Shown piece after piece: positions 33 through 47,634 of a stretch of 64,000 bases of DNA. The stretch comes from Lepidodermella squamata (lineage: Eukaryota > Animalia > Gastrotricha). The notes beneath the pieces are model-generated. The model did not search any database. It saw nothing but the letters and a program-made list of their open reading frames with translations, and was not told the DNA's origin. The DNA is taken from assembly GCA_047495785.1 (NCBI GenBank), contig JBLDXI010000013.1, forward strand, positions 2,914,001 through 2,978,000. Direction: 5' to 3'. The translations under genes and the position numbers were made by a program. Positions within the stretch are counted from its first letter, which is position 1; the number at the start of each line of letters is the position of its first letter.

Positions 33-3000
33 TTGGAGACTAGGCTAAGCGATATCGCGCGAGAAAATGTTATTTTGAAGGAGACTAATGAAAAGCTCAC
101 ACAAAGGTAACTTGCCGTCGAAGCCTTCATTTTTTCGCATTATCAATTATTGTACGATCCACAGTGCTTTTGATGTCGATCGAGAACGCGGCCTTCAAGA
201 TCGAGAATCTGCTTATCGTATTCAAATTCAACAGTTGGAGGCCACGCTCAAGGCTGATTTCGGTGAAAAGTCTTCCATTCTAGAAAAGTTGACAGAAGAA
301 CGAGCAAACGCAGACAAAGTACGACAGGAGCTCAAGGACGAGCGCTTGAAATGCGCGCAGTTGAAGCAAGAGCTGGATGCAATGAACGACAAAATGAAGA
401 TATTTTCGAAGGCTAGCGCTGTTGATTTTGACGAGCTTGGCGAGGCTTTGATGCTTATTCGCGAGAGAAAACGCAATGCAAATAATGTCGCGAACGAGTC
501 AGCAATACTGAAATCGATCGGTAATGCGGCACATGCCCAGGACGGCATCAAAGATTGGAAGAAGTTGTATGAAGAGTTGGAAATCGTTCAAGCTGAAACA
601 GTGAATGAGCTTGATAGAACACGAGCTATTCTTAGTGTTCAATATAGGATTAATAAAGATTACGCGCAGGAAGTTGAAGCAACATCACGCCGCCTTGAAT
701 CAATCCAGTCTGAATCAGAATCCCGACTTCAAGAATACGCGAAACTGTTGGATCTTCGCTTGGCTCGCATTCGGAAGCTCGAGGCTAGACTTCGCGATTT
801 GGCCTACGGGGTTCGCCCTCTGCGGCCCATGGCTATGGTCACCCCAGCTGGTTTCGATGACGAGCAGAAGGGCGAACTCGAGGCTGGCCAAAATCTGTTT
901 GAGATCCACCTTGATACGCTACGCATCAGCTCAGACACCCTGCGTATTTTGGGCGAACCGGAAGTCACAGTTTTCTGTACCTGGGGCTTCTACGAATTCG
1001 AGCTGCAGAAGTCGCCAGTAATTCGGTCTTACAACTCAACTGCGCTTTTCGACTGCACGTCTCAATATATCGTCACAGTTGATGACTTTTTCTTATCTTA
1101 CCTTGCCCATCGTCCGCTGATTATCGAACTTCACCGAGCACGGGGCGGGCTTGATTACGAAACGATAGCTGTTGCTCGAGTTAGCCTGAAGGAATTGCTT
1201 GATTCGCAAGAACCAATTTGCCGCATGTCTGGTAGCGTTCATTTCACCGGACTCTCCGGGGCTCTCGAGGCGATTCAAGTTGCTGAACTCGACTTCTGGG
1301 TGTTACTCCGCGTGCCTATGCAACATGCTTTCCGACTGTTCCGAGAACGCCTCAAAGCCATGAACTACCTCGTCTCTGATGCGAAGAGCCGAGACGCAGC
1401 TAAGGCCGTGATGGATACAGTTGGTCTGGCGAAGTCTGCTGTTGGCGATGAAAATGTGAATATCCTTCACATTCACATTGTTCGATGCCAAAATCTGGTG
1501 GCTTTCAGCGGCAGCCATAACCAATCACAGCCACCCCGCCAGCCAAGCGCCTACGTGGCATATAAACTGCTGGATTACCCTGAACATGTCACAGCTACGG
1601 TGCCAGAGTCGAGCGCTCCTCAGTTCAACGACCACCACACCTTCACTTTGTACACAACTGCTGATACAGATCGATTCTTGAAAACCGAAGCGTTGCAATT
1701 GTTTGTGTTTGACGATGTCGCACCTGATACGGACGCAACTGCTTATCTGGGCCGGGCTCGAATTCCTATGATAAGCCTGACGAATAATCAACCAGTTCAA
1801 GGGTTGTTCGAACTAATGCGAGCTGATGGAACGGCGAGTGGGGTTATCGAAGTTCGATTATCATGGCAGTTTGCCTATAAACCGCCTTCGAATCTTATTA
1901 TGACCGGCCCGCCGAAACTCGGCCCAGATTCGGAGATTCCGGAGGTTCCAGTTCGCGACGTTGATGCGCAAAATCTTCAACGGCAGTTGCAGCAGTCTTC
2001 TCGCCCGCAAACTTCGCAGTTGTTAGGGAAAACTGTTCAAACCGCTGATTCACAGGCTAATCTTCCGCCGGGAACTCTGCCGACCCCGGTTCATTCCATG
2101 GTGGTCCCAGTCGCTGCTGCCCCGGCGCCGGCTCCTCAACTGGTCGCTGCCACCCCGTTCCCGGGTGTTCATGCTCAAATTTTACCAGATACCGCCTCGA
2201 TGAATCAATCGCTTCCACCGCCCCAGCCTACGCCGGTTCTTCAATCCGTCTCACCAGCCTCGATGCCTATCATTTCTCCCGCCCCTCAATCTGTCCCATC
2301 CGATAAGCCGAGGAGCCAGTCAGAATCCGGCTCTCAGCCTGAAGTTGTTTTCGAGTCTGACTCCGAAGGCGTTGTAGTCGAAACATCGCGTCTACCGAAA
2401 TCAGTCCGCCAATCACTTGAACAGGTCGTCTCAATTACGGTTCATTCGCTGCGAATTAAGGCAAATTCCAGCATTGGACGAGATGACAATATCACACAGC
2501 TATTTATTGCCTTTGATTTCGGAGCAATTTCACAGGACGAACTCGAAACGCCGCTGTCGCTGCCAAAACCTACTGGCGGAGCTGAACGGGACTTGTTGTA
2601 CAATTTTACGAAAATTATTCCGGTTGCGCCGTTGAAAAACCCGCAAAACCGAGCGTTTTTAGCGCAACTTATTTCGGGCAGTGACCGAAGAGCCTGTTCG
2701 CTGGTTTTCTCGGTTGTTAACGAGTCGGTCGATTCCGATGAATGCGACGACATTGCCGAGGCCTTGGTCGATATCCGAGATGTCCTAAATCGTGAAGATA
2801 TCCGCGAGAAGGAATTCGAAGGTATAAAAAACAATAATTAAATTTTGAAAAATTTATTAAATTTTTCTAATTTCAGTGCGGTCATTGTCGGACAATTCTG
2901 TGGTTGGATCGCTCAAGTTGACTATAATTTGCCACGATATTCTAGTTGCGATTAAACACGAGTTGGAAAGCGGACATCTAACAGCTTCAACGCAGCCTGA

Positions 3001-3037
3001 TTTATCTCGATCTGTAACAATGTCTCCTACCGTTTAA
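33..3037 (+). CDS. RPGRIP1L: RPGRIP1L/fantom (MKS5/NPHP8)-like ciliary transition-zone protein, 5'-partial; exons 33-106, 165-2821, 2877-3037
   Basis: Coiled coil (YAKLLDLRLARIRKLEARLRDLAYG), then C2 domains (GQNLFEIHL...FCTWGFYEFE; PSAYVAYKLLDYPEH...FVFDD) and a C-terminal C2/RID-like domain. GT-AG introns at 107-164 and 2822-2876 restore the frame. Stop TAA at 3035-3037. Confidence 0.9.
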
Positions 3038-6009
3038 ATAATGAAAGTCTCGCCATCAAAAAAATCCTCCTTAATTTTTCACCTGCTTTTTTGATACACG
3101 TGTCAATTTTCCAACACCATTTTTGCTTTAATGATAATTTATGTCGGAACAATTTCTTTGTTGTTTTGTGCCATTTTTCGTTTGTGCCGCGCGTGATAAC
3201 TTCTCATTGAAAAAAATGTCAAAAATTGGCATTTAAATATATTAAATAATGTGATGTTTTATCATTTATTGCTATTATTATTATTATTTTTATTTGTATG
3301 AAACTGTCAGCACACACACGAGAGTCAATGCGTTTTTACATTTATTATTTGAAAAGAATGAACAACCGCGGTATCTCTCCATCATTGTTTCATTTTTACG
3401 CATTCACCTCCACTGATACTACGTATTTAATGACCGTTTGAAAACAATACTGTGTTCTCGTAAAAATTGTTACAGCATTTTGGACAATAAAAATGTGTTC
3501 AATTGTGCTAATTTTATACCGCCTTTTATTCTTAGGTGACTAATATACCAGGATTTTTTTCCTGAATATTCCCCAGCGCTGTAATCGCGAAAGCCGCAGA
3601 TATCACAAGGTACGTGAGGGGTCCACCTTAATTTTATCGCGCGAGACGAGTGACGCTAAATTGGCTACTGAGCTGATTTAGAAAATTAGCTAGAAATACA
3701 CCTAAAATCATCATCGAGTACACAGGGAATAAAATTACGGGAAATTTGTTGACTCTAGCTTTGGAAAAAAATTAATTACGAAGCTGAATAGGGCCTTACA
3801 ATTGCATTCCTATCAATCTAGGAAAACAAGTGACACCTCTTTTCATGAAAGTGCCTCTTTTCTCTAGGTATTATATTCAATTATAAATTAAAGGGCCCGT
3901 GTTTACTTTTCAGGCGTGAATGAGAAACACGCAGGATTTTTTTCTCACATATACCTGCGATTTTCTTTCTATTACATATTTTGCACCAGTGATAATAGCA
4001 GATGATTGCCCTTAGCATCGCCCCGTCGGTGATGTATCGACCGGGCGCTGATTGCTGATAGCTGACTGTCTGTTAAGTGATTTATTGTTGTTATTGCTAG
4101 GTTATTACTACGGCTGCTGTTCGCAACGCAACGTCAGGGGGCGTTTCAGTAAATGGCTTCTAGGATAGTAGCTGTGTTTACGCACTGTTATACTATAAGC
4201 TAAACACTCCAAGACCAAGGGCAATCGGTTGTTTAGACTACCTACCGACATTTCAGCCGCCCGTCACCTCTCGTTTAGTTTACAATGATCTATTGAGCTG
4301 CGGGCGCCAATCGGTTTGCATTATTACAATTAGACGGTGCGAATGATTGGCCGCTGCCGATTTCGGTGATATGATACTCGAGTGCGATGAGCCCCGAAAC
4401 GATAACCCTGAAACGCTGAGTTCATGTTTACGCAATTAACACAACAGCGCCGCGCCCGTTCAACCGATTATCCCAGCGTAAAAATAGCGATTTTTCAAAC
4501 TCGATATTTATATTATGAGTACTATCTACTACTCCACAACTGACTACAGCAACATAGCGAAAAATGTTCATAATAATAATACATTATTTTCTATGCGGTA
4601 GTGATTATTGAAAAATAACGAATTGTTCTATACTTACTATTTACCTCGCAGCGTGATTGTTCTTAGTGCGTCTTTGCCTTTTGTTATTTTCCCATCATCT
4701 TTGTTTGCCTGCAGCCCATAGCGCATCTATCCGGCAGTATTATACACATACTTGTGGTTTTTTCCCCTCACACCTTGTCATCCGTCTCGAGGACCAGCGT
4801 TAAAAAAAACATCCCTAAGGCGGATAATGACCAACAAATCATTTGACCTTTTCTTTCATCACTCAAGTCATTATTAGGTAGTAATAAATAGCGTGCGTTT
4901 AAAATCGCGCGTGGGGCCGGCCTCGTGATGGCCTCGAGCACACATGTTTGAATAAACGACGGTGGGCTAAATGTCAAACTAGCATGCTATAATATATCTC
5001 GCAAAGCCGTCATCATCATTATCATCAAGGCCACGTGTATAAATTTGCACTAGAAGTTTTATTTTAAAACAAATCCGGATAATTTTTAGCGGTTTAGTGA
5101 AGGCGGTGTTTTCTCGCGCGTCAACAGGTTATCTGAGACTCGAGACCAAATTTATGCGCTTATCCCCGTCGCCGCCGCCCTGTTTTTTTTCGCCGTAGAT
5201 CCCCGGAAAAATAAATTATTATACCTTGTACAACTGCATCGTCTTTTGTACAACCACGCGCGTGTGCTGTATGAAAATGTGCCGTTTTTCGTTGCGGTGT
5301 GTCATCGTTATCATCCTTGAGGCATGCGCGTGTTTGTGCACCCGAGTGTAGGCATGCTTTTCGATGTATAACTTGCCGAACGCAGAAAACAAATACCTTA
5401 TATAAAAAAGATGACTTTTTACTCTCGCTCCTTCTCTTGTCTTCATACAAGTTATGATGCCATGTTATTTTTACCCGGCCTTTTTACGAAACGCCTATTA
5501 GACTGAACACGTGCGCGGGGAATACCGGTGGTTGTAGTCTTACTATAAAACGCGGGTCCCGTTATAAATAACATATTCGAGCTATCCCCCACAAGTAAGT
5601 GCGAGTAGTAGTATATAGCCAAATATTATCAAAAGGGCCGAGCCCCAGTGAGACTCGCTTGGTCTGCTTGGGACAATATAACGAAACGCTTTGTTATATC
5701 GCCTTTATTTTTCGGCAAAGCGGTGAAAAAGCGAGTTACGCCGGAAGTCTCATCACAATAGAGACTGGACATTGCAAAAACCAGCTTCATTAGAGCCAAC
5801 GTTTTTCCGCCTTAATTTTACTAAGCCTGACTTGGTACAAGAGAGGCAAATAACACTTTTATTTATTTATTTATTTACCGTTTCCTACGATCCAGCAAAT
5901 GTGTCTCTCCCCTTGATTATAGGTCGTTTTCGGTTTATTATTAAGTCATATTTATAATATGTGACGTGCTTCGGAAAAAGGAAGTCGAAACCTTTTCTCG
6001 TTTTGAAAA

Positions 6010-39138: not shown

Positions 39139-39694
39139 TTAGTTACCAGTGGTTTTCACAATAGCAACAACACGAGTCTCAAGTTGAGACGCCGTGATTT
39201 TACAAGGCAGAGATGGGTTTTTTGAGAACAGCACTTTGAAAGTCACTTGAGGAGGTTGCCACCAGGAATCGCGCTGCGTTAGCGCATACTCGCCTCGATC
39301 CGCATTCGTCGCGTCCACCTTCGCGCCCCATGCAGAAAAAGCCGCAACTTTACCGGGAAATTTGAGCACGACGTAGGTGTTGTTGTAGTCGGCCGGCATG
39401 TCGATCACGCCTTCAACCTCGTGGCCGTAGGAGGTTTTAAATTTTACAGCAGCGTCTAAATTTTCGAAAAAATATGAAGAATAATTAGAAAATTTCGCGA
39501 AAGCCTGTTTGTAAAATATTTAGGTAATTACCCTGATGGGCATCCGCTTTAACCGCTCTCCGGCACACCTCTCCGTCGTCCTTATTCAGATCGGCCAAGA
39601 CTGATCCGGTCGAATGGCAACTGAATTCCTTACTCAGCGCCAGTTGGCTCAGCGGTAAAATGATTGTGAAAATTCGCATTAAAGTCTCTACCAT
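39139..39694 (-). CDS. Small secreted beta-rich protein, paralog of the C-terminal domain of the 45032-46345 gene; exons 39694-39532, 39455-39139
   Basis: Hydrophobic N-terminus. MPADYNNTYVVLKFP...WGAKVD...GEY...QRDSWWQP...SLPC...ASQLETR aligns with MPKNYNDSFLLVKFP...WGANVD...GEY...QRDTFWQP...SLPC...ASQIETR. Confidence 0.75.
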
Positions 39695-44329: not shown

Positions 44330-45031
44330 TTGATGCGGACAAAAGAAATCGACGAATAATATACTCAGATTGTAAACATCCCCGCGATATGTCTCTTTGT
44401 ATTTCTACTGATTAATCGGCGATTGACGGAAAAATTTGAATAATAACCACCGGGGAAGTGGCACAGTCCAGAACCCGAGCTATAATGATAGCCTCCTCTC
44501 TAATTACCGGCAATCAGCATAATTTTTTGGCGCGATTGCGCATCTTTTTTTTGGTGTATAATTTTTGGTGCGCGCCAAGTTATAAAGCGGAACAAATAAA
44601 AATAATTCTGATATGAGCTGGAAGGGATATGAAATAAATAATGTCCCATTTATGAGACCTTTCAATTTTGTGAATTTGACATGCGGGAGTCGAGAAAGTT
44701 TTTCTCAAATTAAAGTAAAATGAGTAAAATTTATTTAGTAAAAAAATGATGGCGTAGAACCTAAAGAAATTAGGTTCTACGCGCGTCTCGGTTTCTAGGT
44801 TAAACGAGAAGAGGTGGGATAACAGAAAGGATGAGGCTGTTAGACCGTGATTTTATCGCATGATAAGGCTGCGAACGTCTCGCCCGGCTTTGTGCTCATC
44901 TCGCACCTTTTCGCACAGCAATTGAGTTGCGCAATCTCGACCAACCGCGCCCATGGTGGGCCTATAAAAAGAAATCTTGTACCACAAATCTCCTTCACTG
45001 CGATTTTGAATTTCAACTGAATTTTATTTCA

Positions 45032-46345
45032 ATGAATTTTGCGCTAACGTTGCTTCTCGGCTTTGGCCAGCTGCTATGCTTGGTTTACGGCCACAGCTGG
45101 ATAGCTTGTACTGATTACGAGGAGATGAGCGGGCTCTATTACTCGCACGCTAAATGCCGCGGCTTTCCTCGTTCCGGTCACCTGTACACACCAATTTCCC
45201 AACCGTTCGGCTACGAGTCCGGCTACGCTTACGTCCCGACCGAATCATTCCCTTGCAAGACTCTACGCAATGACGTCTGCGGCTACAACGCTCAACATCC
45301 GATGGCTAAGTACCACATCGGCCAAACTGTGGTCATTGCTCACCCTGCTAAGGTAAGTTACGCTGTTACTAAGGGATTTTAATTTTAATTAATTCGAATT
45401 TTATTCCAAGAACCACGCAAATGATCCCCGCTGCAATCAGAACCACAATCAAGATAACGGAAATTTCGTCTACGGTTTTAGGACAGACACGACCACTTTC
45501 ATCGACCCCGTTCGCTCGCACTTCATGAACCGATCCAACCTCGTCGCTGATTTAGGTAAATAAAGTGAGTCCTTATCACGAGCTTAGCCTTCAAATTCCT
45601 TATTTTCAAGGCGTTTCACCTGTAACTGGTCGGCCTGGTTTCACGTACAACGACTTTATCACCTACCCTAAGCAAGGTTTCCAGAACGCGCCGGCCTATT
45701 GCCAAGGCCCGGATAGCGCGCTAGCAACGAATAACATTACGATTCATCGCTCGTGGGCTCCTGGTCGCTACTCTTTCATGTGGGTCTGGTTCATGGGATC
45801 GACCTCGATTTCAAGCGCCTACTCGAGCTGTTGGGAAGCTGATGTCTATGCTACAAAGGCCGAAGCTGATGCTGCTCGAAAGGAAGCTGTGACTCCAGCT
45901 CGCCAAGGTAAAGTTAATTTTCCTTTTTATTTACATTTTTAATTTTATTTTCAAAGACACGCCTGTTGTTTACAATTCAAATTGGGGCTCTGGAGCTGAT
46001 GGTTTGATTTACATGCCGAAAAACTACAACGATTCGTTTCTGTTGGTAAAATTCCCGACTCGAGTCGGTTCGATCTCGTTTTGGGGCGCGAATGTCGATT
46101 CAAGCCGTGCCAGCACAGGCGAGTATAGACTGTGGCAGCGTGACACATTCTGGCAACCGGAAACTGTCGGTTTCACCGTGTCATTCTCCAACGAAGCATC
46201 TCTACCGTGCGGGGTGGCTGCCTCGCAAATCGAAACCCGCATTTTGAGCTACGACACTCTACTACAGCCGGGTAAACGGTACTTTTTGATGCACCGCCCT
46301 ACGCAGAGCACTAACCATGGCTGGGTGCACTGGAGCGGAAAGTGA
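45032..46345 (+). CDS. Secreted His-brace/LPMO-like protein with a C-terminal beta-rich (possibly carbohydrate-binding) domain; exons 45032-45352, 45411-45555, 45611-45907, 45957-46345
   Basis: 20-aa signal peptide ending VYG, followed by HSWIACTDY. Second His in PAKNH. C-terminal GRYSFMWVW...AYSSCWEADV. TATA at about 44963. The gene model is solid; the function is inferred. Confidence 0.65.
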
Positions 46346-46491
46346 CGCGACCTTCTCTTCCCCCAATCTGCTGATAAATACCGTAGTAAAACATTTGTTC
46401 AAGGTTAGAATTTTAAGGTAGATCTGTGATTTTATTCAAATTTTTGTGCAATAAAAAAGGGGCGTTACACAACAATAAAATAACTGATTTT

Positions 46492-47634
46492 TCACGCCAT
46501 TGTTAAATGCCGTTGTTGGGCGAAGTCCATAGACAAGGCGAATGGCCTATTTGAAACAACTAATAAGTCATTCGAGTGCCGCCGTTCGGTTCTTTCATCG
46601 TGGAAACTCGACGATGAATCTTCCTCATCGCATAGCCATGGGCTAACAATTTGAGGGCTAGCATTGCGGGCTCGATCGATCGGTGAGGCATTCACATGCT
46701 GGCGGTCTTCCAACCTATGCACAATGTTCGATTGATTGTGGTCTGGCGTGCAGTATATTGCCGGCGGAGACGGGGAGATGACTCTATTACGTTTTTTAGA
46801 ATATTTCGAGTAGATTACGTAGAAGAAAGTGACGCCGATAACTATTGCCACAACACCGGCTACAACTGTTCCGATGATGATTGCCGTTAAATTAAACTGC
46901 CGCTGATTATTTGGCTTGGCTGGGGTGGTTATCGAAGATATTTGATCGACATCATCAGTGCAATATTCGCAATAATAATAATTAGTATTGCGATTTTCCG
47001 ATAATTTTTCATTTGCTGCTGAGAGCAAATCGATTGAGCCGGATCTTCCTGAATTTGAAATTGAATCTTTTGAAGAAGGCGCGGGTTGAACTGCTGGTCG
47101 AAGAATCGCCGATTTTTGAGCAAGATTAAATCCGCGACGATTACGTGCTACAACACGACTACCAGCTTCCGAACAAAATCGCCAAGCTGCCGATGGTTTG
47201 AGGCTAAGTTTAAATTGAATGCCAGTTTTACGGTGGAATGCGACGTTTGAAAATTCCAAGTCATTTTTAGTCACATGTAGGCTTTTAGGTGAATCATTGA
47301 ACTCAAAACCGGGACAGCATTGTTTGAAGTTCAGCAAATTTTCTAGGCAGAAGCCAATCAATTCATCGGCAACGATTCGCTTCAGTGACCTCCGAATTAT
47401 CAAAAATTCGATTATGGTCAAATTCATTTGAAAGCCAATCTTTCGCGGGCAATTTTCCAGAGCGCCGATGCATTTTCGACTTATTAGATTGCCGTCGTTG
47501 CTAATAGCCAATTGGATGCCAGTTCCGCACGTGACTGAGCATGGCGACCATTTTTCTTTGCGCCGGAACCTTTTGAAGCTTTCGACCTGGCTCGCGAGGG
47601 TATATACGACCAAAATTGCGCTGAGGATATTCAT
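46492..47634 (-). CDS. Type-I membrane protein, array member A (shortest and most diverged)
   Basis: Signal peptide, WSPCSVTCGTG, NFKQCCPGF, RNRR site and a TM helix. Confidence 0.8.
   Translation of the reverse strand: MNILSAILVVYTLASQVESFKRFRRKEKWSPCSVTCGTGIQLAISNDGNLISRKCIGALENCPRKIGFQMNLTIIEFLIIRRSLKRIVADELIGFCLENLLNFKQCCPGFEFNDSPKSLHVTKNDLEFSNVAFHRKTGIQFKLSLKPSAAWRFCSEAGSRVVARNRRGFNLAQKSAILRPAVQPAPSSKDSISNSGRSGSIDLLSAANEKLSENRNTNYYYCEYCTDDVDQISSITTPAKPNNQRQFNLTAIIIGTVVAGVVAIVIGVTFFYVIYSKYSKKRNRVISPSPPAIYCTPDHNQSNIVHRLEDRQHVNASPIDRARNASPQIVSPWLCDEEDSSSSFHDERTERRHSNDLLVVSNRPFALSMDFAQQRHLTMA

Follow-up and report, generated by a model that had tools for sequence, protein, structure and literature searches.

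What kind of protein is encoded at positions 45032-46345 of the 64,000-nucleotide stretch of Lepidodermella squamata DNA (Gastrotricha; contig JBLDXI010000013.1, positions 2,914,001 to 2,978,000, forward strand) that we call the window? Lytic polysaccharide monooxygenases (LPMOs) have changed views on the degradation of recalcitrant polysaccharides, and AA15 is, to our knowledge, the sole LPMO family known in animals, where it occurs mainly in arthropods and molluscs. A first-pass annotation had read the gene as coding for an LPMO-like copper protein outside AA15, and we followed up this reading computationally. The explanation that fits our results best is that the gene probably encodes a secreted two-module LPMO-like copper enzyme with a CBM2-like anchor (CBM, carbohydrate-binding module). 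That the protein is secreted, adopts the LPMO fold and begins with histidine is very likely; that it holds a histidine-brace copper site is likely, judging from its conserved residues. It is an even call whether the protein is catalytically active on chitin, cellulose or a similar glycan.

The protein belongs to a widespread family related to DUF7492

Two further loci of this kind are present in the genome, a paralogue (L002) and a fragment (L003), both on contig C10. The catalytic-domain exon of the paralogue (L002:1507-2249) is intron-free; a word-index protein search with this stretch gave four matches and led to two proteins, one uncharacterised and from a bryozoan, the other metagenomic. 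They begin with ...A/HSWIACTDY (the slash marks the predicted signal-peptidase cut, here and below) and both carry Pfam DUF7492. When a profile made from three sequences was run against 1.84 billion representative proteins, 487 clusters were retrieved at E ≤ 1e-3 and 286 at E ≤ 1e-10. The named members come from Branchiostoma, the tunicates Ciona, Styela and Oikopleura, the annelid Owenia, the brachiopod Lingula, the bryozoan Watersipora and several oomycetes. A few family members bear the automatic name 'chitin-binding type-4 domain-containing protein', and the nearest clusters in a protein language-model search were DUF7492 and 'lytic polysaccharide monooxygenase'.

DUF7492 (PF24320) was the only Pfam family matched in the LPMO-like region of the relatives that we scanned. 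Its gathering cut-off of 27 bits was exceeded by homologue P0001 (35.6 bits) and, within a range of 29-36 bits, by P0001, P0007, P0009 and others; 32 of 64 mature domains matched at E ≤ 0.01. Scores below the cut-off were obtained for the L. squamata paralogue (22.9 bits) and for an orthologue on metagenome contig L010 (19.7 bits), and the window exons, scanned singly, did not match. Nor did these exons match any other Pfam or NCBIfam family at E ≤ 10, because the pieces are too short for so divergent a family, and phmmer searches with exon 1 and exon 4 against PDB sequences returned noise or no match. In the relatives, only profile positions ~185-250 of 265 align, which suggests that the animal clade is either a remote offshoot of the Pfam seed or its sister group. 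The window protein is thus a member of an uncharacterised family related to DUF7492, which is widespread and not peculiar to L. squamata.

The predicted mature protein begins with an invariant histidine

Among the matches listed, HSWxxC follows directly after a hydrophobic leader in 120 of 152 family representatives. Position -1 is A, S, G or C in 114 of 119 representatives and position -3 is mostly V, A, I or T, which is a canonical signal-peptidase site. The window protein reads VYG/HSW, in line with the -3/-1 rule, and the predicted cut would leave HSWIACTDY as the mature start. In an alignment of 64 mature domains, H1, S2, W3, C6, C22, C58, Y77, H92, W190, W192, C204 and W205 are invariant; Y201, the Tyr of Y-x-x-C-W, is found in 63 and is replaced by Phe in the remaining one. 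All invariant residues and Y201 are retained in the window protein, where H92 is the His of PAKNH, a motif that straddles the exon 1/exon 2 junction between K and N, and Y201 is the Tyr of the aromatic-x-x-C strand in exon 3 (Table 1).

Aligning the family profile to PDB sequences placed H92 on His71 of AfAA11A, and Y201 on Tyr133 of AfAA11A and Tyr141 of AfAA11B. In the crystal structure of AfAA11A, His71 is the second brace His and Tyr133 the axial Tyr (PMC8668981); in AfAA11B, Tyr141 is the axial Tyr and a second-sphere residue, Glu139, lies two residues earlier (PMC12186267). Three features had been picked out at first pass, namely signal cleavage after VYG leaving His as residue 1, a second His in PAKNH, and the strands GRYSFMWVW...AYSSCWEADV ending in an aromatic-x-x-C pattern. 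Each of them has been borne out by the conservation of these residues, and the latter two also by their alignment with AA11 ligands. Gln157 (in GFQN) and Glu/Asp206 (in CWE) are near-invariant as well and, by their conservation, could be second-sphere residues.

A homologue of the N-terminal module is predicted to adopt the LPMO fold

We folded residues 21-235 of homologue P0001, which is 38-47 % identical to the window exons, using the 64-sequence alignment. The AlphaFold model had a predicted local distance difference test score (pLDDT) of 94 and a predicted template modelling score of 0.91. Foldseek matched it to 48 PDB chains at E ≤ 1e-3, nearly all of them LPMOs (AA10, AA11, AA9 and AA16). 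With VIA-align, Z scores were 9.2-11.3, and among the matches listed 50 of 50 were LPMOs (AA9, AA10, AA11, AA13 and AA15); in all 50, residue 1 of the model was aligned to the mature His1 of the LPMO. The model thus supports an LPMO fold, superposed from residue 1, in this homologue.

The Z scores did not separate the LPMO families from each other; by sequence, AA11 was nearest. The top three matches of the family profile among PDB sequences were all AA11 (AfAA11A 7P3U, E 0.0015; AoAA11 4MAH, E 0.013; AfAA11B 9EXJ, E 0.017), and AA11 was the sole LPMO family reached in this way. Besides the second His and the axial Tyr, the two families have in common a strand motif, G-x-Y-T-x-x-W-x-W...Y-x-x-C, and the fold from residue 1 onwards (Z 10.4-11.2). 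However, identity in the structural alignments is 14-17 %, the invariant H-S-W-x-x-C start is not the AA11 start, and AA11 is fungal whereas the window clade is animal.

With AA15, represented by Thermobia domestica 5MSZ, the window protein shares an animal source, predicted secretion, an N-terminal His and the LPMO fold predicted via the homologue (Z 10.6). C-terminal carbohydrate-binding extensions are frequent in AA15 (PMC5823890), and the window protein has its CBM2-like module in that place. The profile LPMO_10 (PF03067), which covers AA10 and AA15, had no match at E ≤ 10 in the window exons or in seven relatives including the orthologue, which agrees with the proposal that the family is not AA15. 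LPMO_10 also had no match in the whole genome in six frames, although this exon-by-exon search leaves absence from the genome unproven. The taxa given for AA15 are arthropods, molluscs, algae and oomycetes; chordates and rotifers are not listed (PMC5823890). Literature searches that combined animal group names with LPMO found no LPMO paper. The family is best described as a new one, since databases list it merely as a DUF, our searches found no paper devoted to it, and these taxa are not covered by the AA15 paper. The term 'uncharacterised His-brace family' used in the first-pass annotation therefore holds with respect to the literature and to the conserved candidate brace residues, but needs qualifying in that databases already list the family as DUF7492, with a few 'chitin-binding type-4' names.

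Three other assignments were considered and set aside. AA17 was weighed since oomycetes carry the family; no AA17 structure appeared among the profile matches or the listed fold matches, and no direct test was made. AA18 looks unrelated to the family; the paper cited for that name, by Santos et al. in 2025, reportedly describes the metagenomic cellulose oxidase CelOCE. CelOCE is treated separately in a review (PMC13353379). The Egh16-like/TrsA 'new LPMO family' (PMC12377627) was set aside, as the scanned proteins show only DUF7492 in the region.

The second module resembles CBM2 in its predicted fold

The C-terminal module is encoded by a single exon, and we therefore folded the window's own exon 4. 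In the AlphaFold model, residues 1-100 have a pLDDT of 74-92, and residues 103-128 a pLDDT below 50, so that the last 26 residues appear disordered. The best structural match was the xylan-binding CBM2b of C. fimi (2xbd; Z 8.9, root-mean-square deviation 2.2 Å, 83 of 87 residues), which was the only chain with Z ≥ 8 among 48,161; further CBM2 modules scored Z 6.2-7.2, and archaeal chitin-binding domains were likewise among the next matches. The top six Foldseek matches were also CBM2, with at most 30 % identity, reached for a P. furiosus chitin-binding domain. The model thus has the small beta-sandwich of the CBM2 family, seen in CBM2a and CBM2b of C. fimi and in the chitin-binding domains of archaeal chitinases (2CZN, 2CWR, 5DHD). 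The homologous amphioxus domain scored 21.7 bits with Pfam CBM_2, below the cut-off of 24. What had been noted at first pass as an appended, Trp-containing beta domain is, by its modelled fold, CBM2-like.

Other members of the family have modular partners of their own. In two metagenomic proteins, P0044 and P0049, the HSW LPMO-like domain is fused to a GH5 cellulase (Pfam Cellulase, E 5.5e-50 and 1.5e-36), and P0130 carries a CBM1 above the Pfam threshold. Within the window, a small gene 6 kb from the LPMO-like gene encodes a stand-alone CBM2-like module that is 46 % identical to exon 4 (Table 1).

The gene falls in an animal clade, and its paralogues lack His1

A quick maximum-likelihood tree was built from 77 domain sequences, with exon 1 and exon 3 of the window as separate fragments alongside the paralogue and the orthologue. 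The window fragments are short, and metagenomic proteins that bear no label make up the greater part of the rows. All sequences from this animal fell into one clade with a Shimodaira-Hasegawa-like approximate likelihood ratio test (SH-aLRT) support of 100, which is separate from the oomycete clade. The same clade includes all nine labelled animal sequences (9/9; amphioxus, tunicates, annelid, brachiopod and bryozoan). The contig is several megabases long, in an assembly of 121 Mb, and the neighbours of the gene on it are a transient receptor potential (TRP)-channel gene on one side and receptor genes of animal type on the other. Together, the tree, the introns, the animal neighbours and the TRP-channel neighbour conserved beside the orthologue point to vertical descent in animals and make a recent transfer unlikely. 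The hint of horizontal transfer in the first-pass annotation was not sustained, given the position of the gene in the animal clade.

The paralogue L002 (G000:C10:326488-329718; gene from L002:1362) has Gln at the predicted mature N-terminus (GALS/QSWIACTDY), and this residue would tend to cyclise. The second His, the Tyr and the Cys/Trp core are kept, and are followed by a mucin-like linker, long and rich in Thr, and then by three or more CBM2-like repeats (L002:2552-2690, 2732-~2910 and 2956-3231), the middle one of which is split by an intron. From its sequence, this paralogue looks like a brace-less 'pseudo-LPMO'. The fragmentary copy L003 (G000:C10:314661-317861, ~1347-1843) lies 12 kb away from the paralogue with Gln1. 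Its His1 is replaced by Arg (VLS/RSWIACTDY), its matched stretch is interrupted by two in-frame TAA stops, and it is probably a pseudogene.

Gene structure and its support

The gene consists of four exons separated by three GT-AG introns (Table 1), with a coding sequence of 1152 nt for 383 aa. The orthologue (L010:1950-3155) has the same TRP-channel neighbour as the gene in the window. In L010:2322-3155, the equivalents of exons 2, 3 and 4 form a single open frame that matches the predicted junctions ADL-G-ISPV and ARQ-D-V; the lack of introns 2 and 3 in the orthologue implies intron gain or loss between related species.

Sequencing run X1 bears on the splicing. None of the sequencing runs is recorded as RNA, and the RNA status of X1 is a guess, made from its exon-only coverage and from 22 consecutive T at 46384, which we take for a poly(A) tail. 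In one X1 contig, 45907 is followed at once by the first 16 bases of exon 4. Depth was 0.4-1.3 in the bins with introns 1 and 2, as against 4-18 in exons; intron 3 showed no clear dip, and coverage was zero 5' of 45062. Introns 1 and 2 are thus backed by depth dips and comparison, and a read joint is found at intron 3 only. X1 joints between 'opposite strands' have the appearance of low-depth contig artefacts.

Compared with related strains, the coding sequence has 21 synonymous and 5 non-synonymous differences, and the introns (162 nt in total) have 10 single-nucleotide polymorphisms and 3 indels; intron 2 differs from a related strain by six single-nucleotide polymorphisms. A pseudogene or chance open reading frame was rejected because of this 21:5 ratio and the RNA-like coverage. 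The gene is real, it is spliced as proposed and it is under purifying selection. The intron-containing animal gene annotated at first pass is hence confirmed, with support from X1, the orthologue and the strain differences.

Three further observations concern the locus and its flanks. The paralogue L002 has a box similar to the candidate TATAAAA box of the window gene, TATATAAAA, 5' of its own ATG. The run of 22 T before 46384 in the X1 contig fits the poly(A) site of a convergent receptor gene on the minus strand; this site is ~40 nt from the stop codon of the LPMO-like gene, so that the two 3' untranslated regions may overlap. In DNA run X2, two contig versions were found at 45532-45720 and again at 46048-46264, one identical to the window and the other differing at 11-12 sites, which suggests two haplotypes or strains in the sample.

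Table 1. Coordinates in the window of the LPMO-like gene, its parts and two neighbouring genes
Feature	Position	Strand	Remarks
Small two-exon gene	39139-39694	-	Signal peptide, short Cys-containing stretch, stand-alone CBM2-like module
Candidate core promoter, TATAAAA box	44963-44969	+	63-69 nt 5' of ATG; read from the sequence
Signal peptide MNFALTLLLGFGQLLCLVYG	45032-45091	+	20 aa; predicted cut after V-Y-G (-3 = V, -1 = G)
Exon 1	45032-45352	+	107 codons, ends in phase 0; same exon end in orthologue L010 (...HPTK, then gt)
His1 codon CAC	45092-45094	+	Predicted mature N-terminus, candidate first brace His
Intron 1	45353-45410	+	58 nt, GT..AG; kept in orthologue L010 at the same codon
Exon 2	45411-45555	+	Second codon (45414-45416) encodes the invariant second His (K-N-H)
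Intron 2	45556-45610	+	55 nt, GT..AG; not present in orthologue L010
Exon 3	45611-45907	+	C-terminal strands of the LPMO-like domain (GFQNAP, GRYSFMWVW, AYSSCWEADV), then Ala/Glu-rich linker
Tyr codon of Y-x-x-C (Y201)	45820-45822	+	Candidate axial Tyr
Cys codon of Y-x-x-C	45829-45831	+	
Intron 3	45908-45956	+	49 nt, GT..AG; orthologue L010 contiguous there; exons joined in X1 contig
Exon 4, first part	45957-46258	+	CBM2-like beta-sandwich, ~100 aa; Trp in NSNW, SFW, RLW and TFW
Exon 4, end	46259-46345	+	C-terminal tail of ~28 aa, predicted disordered; TGA stop at 46343-46345
Convergent receptor gene	46492-47634	-	

Proposed function and alternatives

We propose that removal of the signal peptide yields a mature chain that starts with His. 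The first module, of ~215 aa, would form the immunoglobulin-like beta-sandwich of LPMOs. One copper would most likely be held by His1, through both its amino group and its side chain, and by the side chain of the K-N-H His; below the metal would lie the Tyr of the Y-S-S-C-W strand. A short linker rich in Ala and Glu leads to the second, CBM2-like module, which would attach the protein to an insoluble polysaccharide such as chitin, cellulose or a related beta-glycan. The reduced copper centre, together with O2 or H2O2, might then oxidise and break glycosidic chains. In the animal, the enzyme may serve to digest the cell walls of algae or fungi, or to remodel chitin that the animal itself has made.

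Several observations weigh against this proposal. The predicted LPMO fold is assigned via the model of homologue P0001, and we infer the geometry of the brace from alignments alone. The sequence match to AA11 extends over ~40 of 205 positions plus a weak second stretch; with E values of 0.0015-0.017 it is marginal and does not amount to family-level similarity over the catalytic domain. Where AA11 has a Glu two residues before the Tyr (E-x-Y), the family is variable (Asp in 25, a gap in 24 and Glu in 1 of 64 domains) and the window has Ser (S-A-Y). At the position of the axial Ala69 of AfAA11A, which precedes the second His by two residues, 60 of 64 members have Lys. Pfam CBM_2 (PF00553) had no match at E ≤ 10 in the window's exon 4, which keeps the CBM2 assignment at the level of fold. 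The Gln1 and Arg1 paralogues in the same genome indicate that the scaffold can persist without a brace. Proteins of the X325/Bim1 type bind copper and do not cleave polysaccharides (PMC13353379). Lastly, no paper was found that names DUF7492 or treats the family.

Some of these points would be accounted for if the product were a histidine-brace copper protein without polysaccharide cleavage, acting in copper handling, scavenging, buffering or another redox process as do X325/Bim1 and CopC/YcnI-type proteins, with a CBM-like module that only localises it on a matrix. We regard this as unlikely, yet it is the strongest of the alternatives. There are documented LPMO-like families that have an intact brace but do not act oxidatively on polysaccharides (PMC13353379, PMC12186267), and both the unconserved AA11-type Glu and the unusual conserved Lys would be in keeping with such a role. 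However, the near-invariant Gln157 and Glu/Asp206 could provide a second sphere instead. X325/Bim1 proteins are GPI-anchored (glycosylphosphatidylinositol), lack CBMs and have an extra Asp ligand (PMC13353379), whereas the window protein has a CBM2-like module and no hydrophobic GPI-type C-terminus, and no sequence match between the two was seen. Moreover, the family is joined to CBM2-like modules, to CBM1 and twice to a GH5 cellulase; such company is typical of polysaccharide-active enzymes and argues against a pure copper-handling role.

Very unlikely, in our judgement, is a metal-free protein that binds polysaccharide or serves as a structural component of a matrix, built on an LPMO scaffold in which His, His and Tyr are kept for folding or ligand contact. 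AA10 proteins were long regarded as plain chitin-binding proteins, and the C10 paralogue, with Gln1, its Thr-rich linker and at least three CBM2-like repeats, exemplifies a scaffold that persists without His1. Against this, it is difficult to see why 64 of 64 domains and 120 representatives should have a His right at the signal-peptidase site unless the free amino terminus has a role, and the second His and the Tyr fall where AA11 crystal structures have copper ligands. That the gene was recently acquired by horizontal transfer (from a fungus, an oomycete or a bacterium), or that it contaminates the assembly, is highly improbable and was rejected on the tree and the gene context: oomycetes do indeed carry the family in abundance, as do fungi going by automatic cluster labels, and CBM2 is mainly a prokaryotic module, but the gene has three spliceosomal introns, TRP-channel and animal-type receptor neighbours on a multi-megabase contig, a TRP-channel neighbour also beside the orthologue, and a place in an animal clade (SH-aLRT 100) separate from the oomycetes.

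Implications

Having weighed these alternatives, we return to a secreted, two-module LPMO-like copper enzyme as the preferred explanation. A more far-reaching proposal, which we put forward tentatively and hold to be somewhat less probable than not, is that the window gene and its animal relatives make up a second family of animal LPMOs, independent of the first and catalytically active, that merits a new AA family in CAZy. Suspension feeders such as amphioxus, tunicates, the annelid, the brachiopod and the bryozoan might use these enzymes to open algal or fungal walls or to remodel their own chitin or cellulose, and all characterised families would differ from this one in the second sphere of the copper (here Lys-Asn-His, Gln157, Glu206).

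If this is true, a second animal histidine-brace family exists in invertebrate chordates and spiralians, which would broaden the view of how chitin and cellulose are digested or remodelled by animals that do so without the help of microbes. The family would offer a new copper-site environment for mechanistic work and additional candidates for biomass enzymes, and the Gln1 and Arg1 paralogues would be natural brace-less controls. With 487 clusters and no publication found, a single expression-and-assay study could give a function to a whole DUF.

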